Assembly: GCA_964035545.1 (NCBI GenBank)
Contig: OZ037765.1
Span: 32,549,504 to 32,613,503 of the forward strand
Direction of reading: 5' to 3'
DNA length: 64,000 bases
DNA from: Bugula neritina
Lineage: Eukaryota > Animalia > Bryozoa
Both the position numbers and the translations under genes were made by a program. Every line of letters begins with the position of its first letter. The first letter of the stretch is position 1. The notes under the pieces are model-generated. The model was not told the DNA's origin. It made no database searches and saw only the letters and a list, made by a program, of their open reading frames with translations. Below are positions 267 to 41,557 of this stretch, piece after piece.

Positions 267-3200
267 AAGGTCACTCCGATGGTAGAGCTTAATAATAGAT
301 TCATCAGTGCATGGCTCTAAATCCAATTCTAATTCCACAGGAGCGTTGGCATTTAACCCCACGTATTTTTCCCACTCAATATCAGATTCAGGAATTTCCA
401 GCTTTTTGACTAAAATAGCAATAAAAGCTGAAATATTTTTTACTAGCATCATGGTTCAGGAATCTATCCTCCTTTTGCACCTAACTAAAGCAGGACCAAA
501 GACATGCCAATAAACAATACAGCTGTAATCACTTCTGTGCAACAATTAAGCAACCATGCTATGATGCAAACCTATATATATATATATATATATATATATA
601 TATATATATATATATATATATATATATATATATATATATATACATATATGTATATATATATATATATATATATATATATATATATATATATATATATATA
701 TATATATGTATATATATATATATATATATATATATATATATATATATATATATATATATATATATACATATATGTATATATATGTGTGTATATGTGTGTA
801 TATATGGAATGTGACTTTCCTCTTCACAAAGCAGTAGCAAAGCTTAGTTACCTGGTTGACAATCCCGTCTCTTTTTTTGACTCGAAAAGAACTCTTCCAA
901 GCCTTTTAAATCCGTATCTTCTAGTTCAAACCCTAATCAAAAAAGAGAACCAATCATAAGAGATGCGTGCCTACAGTACCATGAACATCTTCATCACGCA
1001 GTGCTTAATTACATATGACAAGCATCATCTAACATGTATGATTTCATTTAAGTCACAATATTTCAGAAGAGGCACTTGCAGATTATTAGGTATGCCTTAC
1101 ATTTGCCAATAATTGTAGCAAAAAGCTTACTAGAGAATGTGCTTTGTTTTCACATTTTTATGAGCCGGTTTCCGCACACTTTTATTCCATTGAAGAAAAA
1201 TTTACAAGAAAAATGAAGATCCTAATGACTAGATCTGTTTAACAGTTTAAAGATGTTGGCTAAAAAGCTTACCAACACATATAACAGTTAAAAAAAAATC
1301 ACGCTTGCACACATATAATCAATCAAAATTAGCCTGGAAAAACACTATGGGTCATTTCACTTAATCTCCAGTTTTTAGCTATTTTTTACAATTTAGCCGC
1401 TAATGAACATGGGTTTCTGCTCAAAACTAGTACAATAACAATAATTGCACTTAAATAATTAGGGTTCTTTTTAATTTTGCTTGATTGCCCATGCTTTTTC
1501 CTAATTATACATCTACTTTTGATTGTGGACCATTACGGTTTTTTCTCAACGGTCCGCAATTCCAATTAGCTACTTAAATAAGAAAAAACATGGGAAATAA
1601 AGCAAAATTAGGAAGAACCTTGATTGGTTAGGTGCATTTATTGATATATTACTAGTTTTGGGCAAAAACCCATGTTCATTAGCAGCTAAATTTTGAAAAA
1701 AAGCTAAAAACTAGAAAGTTCCAGTGTGTATTTAATTAAGTAAAATGACCCTTATCCAATTTTGAAATTGCCGTGTGTATCAGAATATGCTTACTAGGAT
1801 CAATAGCTGCAGTCAGTCTTTTTTCAGTGCATCTACAGATTTTCTTTTTCAGAGTGCCATGATTTTTAGAAAACTTGCATAATGGAGGAAGTTTACCTTG
1901 CATGATTCTTTCGTAACTAAACCATTCAGGTTCTTTTATAATTTCAGGGTCTTCCTTGCCTAACCAAAGGCAGCTAGTGCAATAAAAGGAGAATGTGGGC
2001 CTAACACCCCTACAGGCACATACGACAACGTCAACAATGCATGTAGCAACTTTTATTAACTGGTCCCATGCTTCGCTAATTTTTCTGATAGGAGAAAAAA
2101 CTTGGATTATCAGTCGTTGGTGCTTTTCATTTATGACTTGAACAAAAATGTCTTCTTCTTTCAAATCTACCCGCAAACCATTTCGAGCAATTTTTGATTT
2201 CCTTTGAGCAAAGCTACCCAGCACTCTACTCACTATTTGATTGCCTAAGTAATGTGGCATGTGAAACTTGGAAAAAGAAATTTCAAAGCGAAATTGCATC
2301 TTTTCTTCACTGAAAGGCTCCAGCTCTAAATAATCCGTAGTAAAAAGGGGAAAAATAAAACATTTGTCAGCTTGAGACCAAACAGCTAGAGAAAACGCAA
2401 TTATTAGAGCTTGAACAAGATCGTACCGCATTTCAAGATTTTCCCATTTGATCAATTCTTTCAACAAGGTTTCATCTAATTTACCTTCTCTATGAAAACG
2501 ACAAATGCTTTTGGCAGTAGGATTGGAGTCCAAATGTTCCCTAATCTTTTCGTCTATATCAATATCAAATTCTCGGCACTTTTTAAAATCATCGCAGATA
2601 TCTTCAACCTTGGTTTTCCAGAATGTATCTCCATTGGATTTGAAAAGTGCCTCAAACACTTTGGTAATTTGGGGAATGTTTCCAAAAACGTATTCACTAA
2701 GAAATTTTTCTGTTGAAAACCAAACAATCTTTCCAGTGCCTGCCAAATACCTCAACACCACATCCCACTCCTTGACTTCTCTAAACTGTGATTTTAACCC
2801 AGAAAGATCTCTGTAAGCTTTGGTTTGATCACAAATGTCAGCTCTCACTTCTTCCCATAAACATGGCATTACAGTTCTGTAGTCTTCAGAGCGAAATTGA
2901 ATACGATTTTTGAGAGATTGATAATCAGGCAAAGGGCTAGTACTACAAAAATTTTCTATTAGAAAAGTATCTTCCTCATCAAAAATACAACCATTCAATA
3001 ATTGCCTTAGTTCAAAGAATTTGTGCTGTTCACTCTCATTGCTATGGAGTGCAAACGTTTCCTTCATAAGACACTTTGTTTCTTCATTCAGACTACAACA
3101 GATTTCTTTTGATTCTTCACATGAAACATCTTTTGAAGAGATGAGCACAAGAAATGGCTTACCGAGGCGTGGACACACCGAATATAATGGATATAACCAA

Positions 3201-41100: not shown

Positions 41101-41557
41101 CTGAGCATTGTTTAGAACTGGGTGGGGTTGATAAATTTTGTATTACAAGCAACATAATTGAATTAATACATAATGGCACAGCTATAAATGTACCAGTCCA
41201 AGCATGACTTAGTAATAATTATCAAATAATGCCTACAGATATTTACTATACTATACTCTTAGTTTGTCACAAATAAGGTCTATAATGGCTGACCTCTACT
41301 GTACAGTCTAGTACTAGTACCAGTAGCTGCACCTAATTGGGAAAACAAATCATGTTGGCTAACAATTTACTTAATTTCCTGATGAATTTTAGGTGGAGCA
41401 CCGGGTGAGAGAATATTGGATTAAAACCCGAAAAATCGGACAGTCAACATTGATTATAGACACGCTGACAAGTTTTAGGAAGCTTTACCTGTTTCCTGGA
41501 TATGATGGCTCCCGCAAGCATGGACTTGGGTATACTTCTCGTAGACGAGGCTCATAA
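14150..41557 (+). CDS. Gene B: LRR-Roc-COR-pseudocaspase fusion protein (~1453 aa)
   Basis: Exon model: 14150-14180, 14484-14712, 16043-16186, 17105-17248, 19084-19227, 19668-19811, 24363-24506, 27568-27711, 28558-28701, 33042-35044, 35142-35237, 35486-35563, 36467-36606, 38078-38236, 38794-39016, 39568-39687 (GC donor), 39907-40016, 41393-41557 (TAA). All junctions are phase-compatible and give one open frame with LRR, Roc G1/G3/G4, COR and caspase p20/p10 motifs. Confidence 0.8.
14484..14712 (+). CDS. Gene B N-terminal exon (LRR cap region)
   Basis: Part of ORF 14462..14716. Acceptor ttattccAG at 14483, donor GTAAGG phase 2. KYKVWFR aligns with gene A KIKAFYIR. Confidence 0.7.
16043..16186 (+). 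CDS. Gene B LRR cassette exon 1 (two LRRs, 48 aa)
   Basis: AG..GT, 144 nt, phase 2-2: ISSLRNLEVLNISGNNLSEGLPDDVFTSLLSLRELNMWNCRLETLPN. Confidence 0.9.
16325..17045. mobile_element. Degenerate MITE in LRR intron
   Basis: ctacagtaggaactgaactgtgaa (~16328) vs ttcacagttcagtttcaaccatag (~17019); internal tttactagc repeats. Confidence 0.45.
17105..17248 (+). CDS. Gene B LRR cassette exon 2
   Basis: 144 nt, phase 2-2: ILQLKNLEVLNLSWNNLSEDLPDNIFTSLLPLRKLNMEYCKLQTLPS (not in the ORF track on the + strand). Confidence 0.9.
17665..18545. mobile_element. Degenerate inverted-repeat element in LRR intron
   Basis: atgcatatcatttgaaa (~17667) vs tttccaatgatatgcat (~18524); ccagatagaagcttt..ttagacgcta vs tagcatctaa..aagtttctatctgag. 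Confidence 0.45.
19084..19227 (+). CDS. Gene B LRR cassette exon 3
   Basis: 144 nt, phase 2-2: ISLLKNLEVLDISGNNLTEGLPDNIFTSLLSLRDLDIGYCELPTLPN. Confidence 0.9.
19668..19811 (+). CDS. Gene B LRR cassette exon 4
   Basis: 144 nt, phase 2-2: ISSLKNLEVLNISWNKLSKGLPDNIFTSLLSLRELYMSYCKLPTLPN. Confidence 0.9.
19881..23595 (+). mobile_element. ISL2EU (PIF/Harbinger-related) non-autonomous foldback transposon with ~1.05-kb inverted arms
   Basis: Arms 19881-20925 and 22542-23595 are near-perfect reverse complements; AT target-site duplication; THAP-tail-like NGQPTKQNPTSIFHLGY (~20960) and transposase remnant LMKLRQG...IIDCTEISICKP (22299-22541). Confidence 0.85.
22299..22541 (+). pseudogene. Truncated ISL2EU/Harbinger DDE transposase fragment
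   Basis: HTH_Tnp_4-like LMKLRQGL..ILASLF.IS and first catalytic motif IIDCTEI, cut off at the right inverted arm. Confidence 0.8.
23596..23900 (+). repeat. Intronic direct repeat copy 1 (copy 2 at ~27742-28040)
   Basis: About 300 bp nearly identical downstream of LRR exon 4 (once the transposon is removed) and LRR exon 6. Confidence 0.9.
24363..24506 (+). CDS. Gene B LRR cassette exon 5
   Basis: 144 nt, phase 2-2: ICSLKNLEVLNISGNNLSEGLPENIFTSLLSLRELNMSVCRLETLPN. Confidence 0.9.
24538..26756 (-). mobile_element. Decayed Tc1/mariner transposon
   Basis: TA|CAGTGCTGTGAAAAAG left end, degenerate ...ttcacatcactg|TA right end. Minus-strand HTH (LHKKGYSIRKISEKVGKAKTTLHQIIKKF..TGSV, 25730-25906), QDDNAPCH (~25170) and SPDLNPIEN (~25075), with frameshifts and stops. 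Confidence 0.8.
27568..27711 (+). CDS. Gene B LRR cassette exon 6
   Basis: 144 nt, phase 2-2: ISSLKNVEVLNISENNLSEGLPDNIFTSLLSLRELNMEDCKLSALPY. Confidence 0.9.
28043..28262 (+). pseudogene. Two relic LRR exon fragments (3' end with donor at ~28043-28070; 5' end with acceptor at ~28226-28262)
   Basis: gctggaaacacag|gtgtgct resembles the exon 5 3' end; tatag|c atg tct tct ctg aag aat atc gag ata tta (MSSLKNIEIL) resembles the exon 5' end and then runs into a stop. Confidence 0.6.
28302..28534 (-). mobile_element. tRNA-derived SINE with 17-bp TSD
   Basis: Minus strand gggagcagccgtggtcaaggggttaa (A box) ... gttcgagtcc twice (B box); flanked by tatacttgtatcctata at 28285-28301 and 28535-28551. 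Confidence 0.8.
28558..28701 (+). CDS. Gene B LRR cassette exon 7
   Basis: 144 nt, phase 2-2: ISSLKNVEVLNISENNLSEGLPDNIFSSFQLLRELNVGNCELLTLPN. Confidence 0.9.
29387..30820. mobile_element. Non-autonomous DNA transposon with degenerate long TIRs
   Basis: gtactagctgatttctttatggctgattttgcaatcggcaaaaa (~29415) vs ttttcgccgattgcaaaatcggccatagagaaatcggctagtac (~30737); ttatttttctgcttgcgttttattggcagatgg is also inverted near 30682. Confidence 0.65.
30822..31866. mobile_element. PIF/Harbinger-type MITE
   Basis: 14-bp TIR tagcttattcacac / gtgtgaataagcta, flanked by TTA on both sides. Confidence 0.7.
33042..35044 (+). CDS. Gene B large exon: terminal LRRs, Roc GTPase, COR
   Basis: ORF 33112..35088. 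G1 GNTMAGKTS, G3 DMGG, G4 THTD; COR motifs PLVWEEV, YMHNCGKVLWY, FVVP; CAHC tail. Confidence 0.93.
36838..37117. repeat. Dispersed repeat; inverted copy at ~63037-63278
   Basis: Shared aatatagctggcatagc..gtgatac.tgaaaagcta..tagggaaaagct.tcccagcttatgtaaagtc. Confidence 0.75.
37459..37644. mobile_element. Small foldback element
   Basis: aaaatggcacaggta ... tacctgtgccatttt inverted ends with a G/T-rich core. Confidence 0.55.
38078..41557 (+). CDS. Caspase (peptidase C14A) p20/p10 domain exons of gene B, catalytically altered
   Basis: VFKMSPIRGRALIINN..F; CIMAHG (His codon 38875-38877); GSDG; GKPKVVVIETYKG (Tyr 39007-39009 at the Cys position); DDLLII; STLINCL; GQ....DTL..FRKLYLFPG. Confidence 0.88.
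40161..40440. repeat. (TAC/TGC)n microsatellite
   Basis: Visible run in the last intron of gene B; source of the poly-L/Y/S/V ORFs. Confidence 0.95.

Follow-up and report, generated by a model that had tools for sequence, protein, structure and literature searches.

The window analysed here, a 64,000-nucleotide stretch of the 216-Mb genome of a bryozoan of the Bugula neritina complex (G000:C1:32549504-32613503), carries two divergent genes, A (minus strand) and B (plus strand), of a leucine-rich repeat (LRR)-Roc-COR-caspase family. Gene A combines a degenerate GTPase with a complete-looking caspase, whereas gene B combines an intact GTPase with an eroded caspase. We put it just short of an even chance that the two are functionally coupled, as a linked sensor/executor pair, probably not an obligate one, that arose from a one-chain Roco-caspase family. 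As such, they may constitute a two-part receptor with a putative immune role.

The models of both genes were built by script, and similarity searches were run with single exons or stored proteins. The NCBI assembly of B. neritina (VXIV02003034.1) contained orthologous DNA at 87–95% identity and was syntenic from gene B to the downstream MFS gene. Since the name B. neritina covers several sibling species, with COI identities of 88–92% (PMC4183541), we infer that the NCBI, JGI and Logan data represent a sibling lineage of the window genome. The features below derive from the gene models, with further evidence in brackets.

8370–8388, minus: gene A, first coding exon, ATG at 8388, phase 1
7260–7458, minus: gene A, exon 2, N-terminal cap, phase 1 to 2
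4237–6193, minus: gene A, three LRR exons, phase 2/2 (6050–6193, 5041–5187, 4237–4383)
1795–3725, minus: gene A, LRR-pseudoRoc-COR exon, degenerate P-loop at ~3458–3484 (motif reading; ortholog 84% identical in amino acids)
852–932, minus: gene A, linker exon
267–409, minus: gene A, pre-caspase exon, phase 0, after which the caspase lies off-window
8389–14149, no strand: microsatellite-rich interval between the A and B ATGs (AT skew changes sign at ~12.0 kb)
14150–14180, plus: gene B, first coding exon, beginning Met-Gly-x-x-x-Ser, myristoylation-like (Gly2 also in the ortholog)
14484–14712, plus: gene B, exon 2, N-terminal cap
16043–28701, plus: gene B, seven 144-nt LRR exons starting at 16043, 17105, 19084, 19668, 24363, 27568 and 28558
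33042–35044, plus: gene B, LRR-Roc-COR exon, G1 at ~33352–33375, G3 and G4 intact (motif reading)
35142–36606, plus: gene B, linker exons 35142–35237, 35486–35563 and 36467–36606 (joined in RNA contigs)
38078–41557, plus: gene B, caspase exons 38078–38236, 38794–39016, 39568–39687, 39907–40016 and 41393–41557

The two ATGs (8388 and 14150) lie 5.8 kb apart, and the change of AT-skew sign between them is what divergent transcription would be expected to leave. Gene A encodes 937 amino acids in eight exons running from 8388 down to 267, with an open frame within the window; gene B encodes 1453 amino acids in 18 coding exons from 14150 to 41557, with no internal stop and one GC-AG intron. Their phases agree exon for exon (1,2,2...,1,1,0), with one linker exon fewer in A. 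When the ~130 mapped caspase exons of the family were ordered by strand, A and B alone formed a divergent pair less than 100 kb apart; their caspases are 40 kb apart, and the next divergent junctions span 178, 236, 254, 259 and 341 kb. The RNA runs that contain a gene A exon also contain spliced gene B, an observation of contig presence that carries no level, start or cell type. A first-pass annotation of this DNA, made from the letters and their open reading frames, had described divergent paralogs with shared exon structure and phases, a degenerate GTPase and three LRR exons in A, and an intact GTPase and seven variable LRR exons in B, and these descriptions hold.

The G1 motif of gene A reads GPSESQKNT and its G3 motif NFGK, and G4 is also altered. 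Of the other paralog exons, 50 distinct ones were read, and every one kept GxxxxGKT and DxxG. The same three motifs are dead in the sibling-lineage ortholog, so that neither protein has the GxxxxGK[ST] and DxxG of an active Roco GTPase. Gene A is single-copy; its closest paralog is 29% identical, and its branch in the tree measures ~2 substitutions per site. Between lineages, its long exon differs by 7.1% and the flanking introns by 4.3–5.5%, the ratio of nonsynonymous to synonymous substitution rates (dN/dS) is 1.09, and amino acid identity is 84%, compared with 93–96% for other single-copy members. The long exon nevertheless contains no stop (chance 0.002), and its indels are net in-frame. 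The predicted structure (75 homologs, predicted local distance difference test score (pLDDT) 84) matches the C. tepidum Roco and LRRK1/2 over its whole length, with 6HLU as the best match (E 1.5e-16). Gene A is a maintained pseudo-GTPase, a Roc-COR scaffold joined to a protease that looks complete, and selection on the gene is relaxed or diversifying.

A caspase of gene A had been anticipated to the left of position 1, and it was located there, through match coordinates and two short motifs from genome-wide motif searches. Its His/Cys exon lies at G000:C1:32548086-310 on the minus strand, 1.2–1.4 kb left of position 1; it reads QACSG, with I-M-C-H-G in frame 38 codons ahead of the Pro of the QACSG motif. 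The small-subunit exon follows at 32546742-852, ~2.7 kb left of position 1. With His-Gly and Q-A-C-x-G in one frame and a small-subunit exon, the caspase looks complete and is predicted from its motifs to be catalytic. The pre-caspase exons of A and B had also been said to match. They do so in position and phase, on which we base their equivalence, but not in sequence, as 73% of shuffles scored equally high.

In gene B, the LRR exons have lengths of 144 nt, compared with 144/147/147 nt in gene A, and are all in phase 2/2, with mutual identities of 72–91%. There are seven of them here and three in the NCBI ortholog, and a truncated LRR exon relic lies within the array at ~28227. Positive selection on these exons was not supported, the overall ratio of nonsynonymous to synonymous differences per site (pN/pS) among them being below 1. 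The array also contains a ~1-kb inverted duplication (20000–23600) around a DDE-transposase remnant (HTH_Tnp_4, 22299–22565), and a Tc1-like transposase fragment lies in a gene B intron at 25733–25999.

Pfam recognised the Roc of gene B (E 3e-7) and, weakly, COR-A. Over the Roc-core codons 110–330, a pN/pS of 0.1–0.2 indicates purifying selection, and RNA contigs of three studies join six of the 3′ exons. The clade of gene B is the most expanded of the family (at least 65 exons at 62–86%). Its Roc-COR has its nearest counterpart (86%) in a gene at C1:34.0 Mb, the caspase exons of these two genes being only 34% alike; the caspase of B is closest to those at C1:35.34, C2:28.61 and C8:4.89 Mb. 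By this comparison, gene B looks chimeric.

The caspase of gene B keeps a His-Gly (His codon 38875–38877), but its Cys site reads ETYKG, with Tyr encoded by TAT at 39007–39009. We ruled out an assembly error because short reads of what is probably the source run assemble into a contig identical to the window over 37612–39800. The S1 Arg, kept by 23 other exons read, is His in both lineages, and the loop ahead of the second arginine is 3–4 residues short, at the GC-AG intron. Gene B thus has neither the catalytic Cys nor the S1 Arg of an active caspase. In one contig of RNA run X1, an A-to-C change at 38876 turns the catalytic His into Pro and a codon is deleted just after it; one contig of RNA run X6 has the codon deletion without the His-to-Pro change. 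Compared with the ortholog, the caspase exons differ by 33 nonsynonymous and 9 synonymous changes (dN/dS near 1), which fall equally on both lineages where they can be polarised. The protease of gene B looks dispensable. That gene B retains its switch, but not proteolysis, suggests that it signals via another molecule.

As to the same caspase, 15 nonsynonymous changes and 1 synonymous change relative to the ortholog fall in the last exon (41393–41557), a burst of change. At the GC-AG intron (39687–39907), the donor side fits the RNA contigs and the junction fits the NCBI model. A single-sequence fold prediction of this caspase was unusable (pLDDT 37).

Both genes belong to a family of ~110–135 genes, for which we mapped ~130–135 caspase exons genome-wide. 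Eighty-nine of these exons had a clean Cys motif, while ~50 fitted neither motif and stay unclassified; in relaxed motif searches, only gene B and a member at C8:8.28 Mb lacked the Cys among clean-motif exons. That second exon (G000:C8:8282660) has Ala at the Cys site. We also considered the C6 cluster as a pseudo-caspase subfamily and rejected it, as His-Gly and EACSE are present in a C6-type gene of the sibling lineage. At G000:C9:9.32-9.41 Mb, caspase exons form a dense array with a spacing of 3–30 kb, some with the clean Cys motif and others without. A literature search with most subscription journals outside its reach found no paper on an animal Roco-caspase fusion or a pseudo-GTPase Roco, and the metagenome scans made in this analysis found nothing. 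On that literature search, the bryozoan LRR-Roc-COR-caspase family is undescribed.

Initiator caspases are activated by dimerisation. The C. tepidum Roco is a dimer when empty or GDP-bound and a monomer with GTP (PMC5714945). Given these two properties, a nucleotide-blind gene A should tend to self-activate unless restrained. RGA5 restrains RGA4 (PMC10561179), and gene B, with its non-cutting caspase fold and working switch, fits by analogy the role of such a restraining sensor. In the coupled pair, gene B, possibly membrane-anchored via myristoylation, would sense by its variable LRR array and switch by its Roc GTPase, its caspase fold now being mainly a docking module; gene A, unable to cycle nucleotide, would provide the protease. 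The catalytic states of both genes are predictions from motifs, and binding between A and B, the direction of control and co-regulation are putative. In the most likely wiring, resting B would hold A off through COR and caspase-fold contacts, ligand and GTP loading would alter the dimer state of B, as GTP does for the C. tepidum Roco, and the A caspases, once freed, would dimerise and cut. Equally open is a scheme in which B would activate A within a heterodimer, in the style of c-FLIP-L and caspase-8.

Several observations weigh against coupling. Almost every paralog unites both activities in a single chain, which means that the design of the family calls for no partner, and the pair was picked for its coincidence among more than 100 genes. 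Identity between A and B in Roc-COR is only 24%, and a COR heterodimer is therefore not a given. The conservation of the gene B Roc may be due in part to gene conversion (pS 0.23 in the Roc exon). The sibling contig has, over the 8 kb upstream of gene B, a long terminal repeat (LTR) element and a piece of a long interspersed nuclear element, then microsatellite, and does not reach gene A. The LTR retroelement (L077:640-7300) sits ~1 kb upstream of the gene B ATG, inside the counterpart of the A–B interval. On the linkage of the two orthologs the sibling assembly speaks neither way, since the gene B contig runs out in repeats at 8.4 kb upstream and the gene A ortholog is on separate short contigs. 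Six sibling-lineage assemblies have Cys (TGT) at the gene B site, which makes the Tyr lineage-specific and means that a clean dead/live split between A and B is not fixed. The first-pass annotation had called the caspase of B dead and the defects of the two genes apparently complementary. The Tyr and the absent S1 Arg agree with the former, and the complementarity stands in the window genome, with the loss in A also present in the sibling; the loss of the B Cys is not shared. The reading of B as variable sensor and A as executor, made in that annotation, is thus supported in part.

The kept Cys also favours independent fates in a birth-and-death family, a reading that we regard as a tentative possibility. 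Here, A would be an old singleton, a GTP-independent caspase, and B a fast-evolving chimera whose protease is decaying or being retuned, and they would be neighbours through an ancient duplication or inversion at the margin of the C1 cluster. That cluster holds blocks of both orientations, and the dN/dS near 1.1 of the gene A Roc-COR is as in a relaxed domain. Moreover, full-length LRR-Roc-COR-caspases occur in Watersipora subatra (XP_067947674.1, XP_067948342.1), and XP_067948342.1 has a pseudo-Roc with a live dyad. As the 10 kb upstream of it hold no Roco gene and it did not group with A, pseudo-Rocs, on this sequence comparison, arise repeatedly and need no tight pairing; the Watersipora pseudo-Roc genes would have arisen separately and without a close partner. 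What speaks for coupling instead is that two rare defects occur together in the sole tight divergent pair, and that a conserved Roc, splicing and a dispensable protease in B imply some partner.

Damaged-P-loop Roco proteins were also seen in Watersipora and further samples (P0151 (L074), P0128 (L075) and P0154), apparently independent of A. Orthology of gene A with the Watersipora or ENA pseudo-Rocs was rejected by the tree, in which the placement of A is weak and its branch very long.

Gene A could be a helper or hub shared by many family members, in the style of the plant NRC network, with B merely its nearest client. We consider this improbable: A is indeed single-copy among more than 100 paralogs, and there is at least one further Cys-less member, on C8, but most paralogs have their own dyad, and A evolves faster than the other singletons, whereas hubs are usually conserved. 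That B or both genes are early pseudogenes with nothing functional is very improbable, because, despite a dN/dS near 1 in the A long exon and the B caspase, both frames stay open (937 and 1453 codons) with indels that are in-frame on balance, RNA contigs from three studies show B spliced, and purifying selection acts on the Roc core of B.

The LRR-Roc-COR order and fold are common to A/B, the C. tepidum Roco and human MFHAS1/MASL1: Pfam places Roc and then COR in gene B, and gene A matched Roco structures over its whole length. To our knowledge, neither MFHAS1 nor the C. tepidum Roco has a caspase; the two Watersipora proteins have the same C-terminal caspase as the A/B family. Compared with Roco proteins of the LRR-Roc-COR type, gene A is without nucleotide motifs. 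Neither gene belongs to the NLR family, as each has Roc-COR in place of NB-ARC or NACHT. Caspase-8 and c-FLIP-L offer a precedent of an active caspase with a paralog that has Tyr at the Cys site, as do gene A, predicted active, and gene B. However, A and B are without death-effector domains, and in gene B most alleles have the His and the sibling lineage retains the Cys.

The paired NLRs of plants (Pik-1/Pik-2, RGA5/RGA4, RRS1/RPS4) resemble A/B in being tightly linked, often head-to-head, and in a proposed division into sensor and executor (PMC10561179). The Bugula pair differs in having a Roc GTPase rather than NB-ARC, a protease output and no integrated decoy, and in that the P-loop was lost by the putative executor A and not by the sensor (PMC10561179). 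In the accessible part of a study on bacterial AP-GTPase conflict systems (PMC8195603), these are LRR-Roc-COR-effector proteins, in which the effector can be a caspase; like A/B, they have fast-evolving LRRs, Roc-COR and a C-terminal effector, whereas A/B are animal, spliced and part of a family of more than 100 genes. The same part describes a STAND system of two genes in which one NTPase is eroded, but not a two-gene split of activities in an LRR-Roc-COR-effector system. Brown-algal ROCO genes, which have shuffled LRR exons (PMC11378527), share with A/B symmetric LRR exons varying in number and sequence; they have one LRR per exon, as opposed to two per 144-nt exon in A/B, and are without caspase (PMC11378527).

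It seems doubtful to us that bryozoans have more than once divided an LRR-Roc-COR-caspase receptor of one chain into linked, dedicated pairs, each of a GTPase-live, protease-dead sensor and a GTPase-dead, protease-live executor. If they did, such pairs would be an animal parallel, based on a GTPase, to the paired NLRs of plants, with the B protease being lost by differing mutations across populations. The control of an output domain by Roc-COR, and action in trans within a heterodimer, are still debated for LRRK2-type proteins; a natural pair with one dead GTPase and a caspase readout would make in-trans control directly testable, and would show a sensor/helper division of labour that arose in an animal immune-type family outside NLRs. 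If A and B are uncoupled, the finding reduces to a rare pseudo-GTPase in a family of bryozoans that is undescribed.

Downstream, an MFS transporter gene (~42900–57300, minus strand) converges on gene B and is syntenic in the NCBI assembly; a 44-bp tandem array lies within one of its introns at ~54.3–55.5 kb. At 45200–50800, the window holds an intact Gmr1-type gypsy open reading frame of 1482 amino acids, with the integrase before the reverse transcriptase. As it is missing at this site in the NCBI contig, the element is, by this sequence comparison, a recent insertion.

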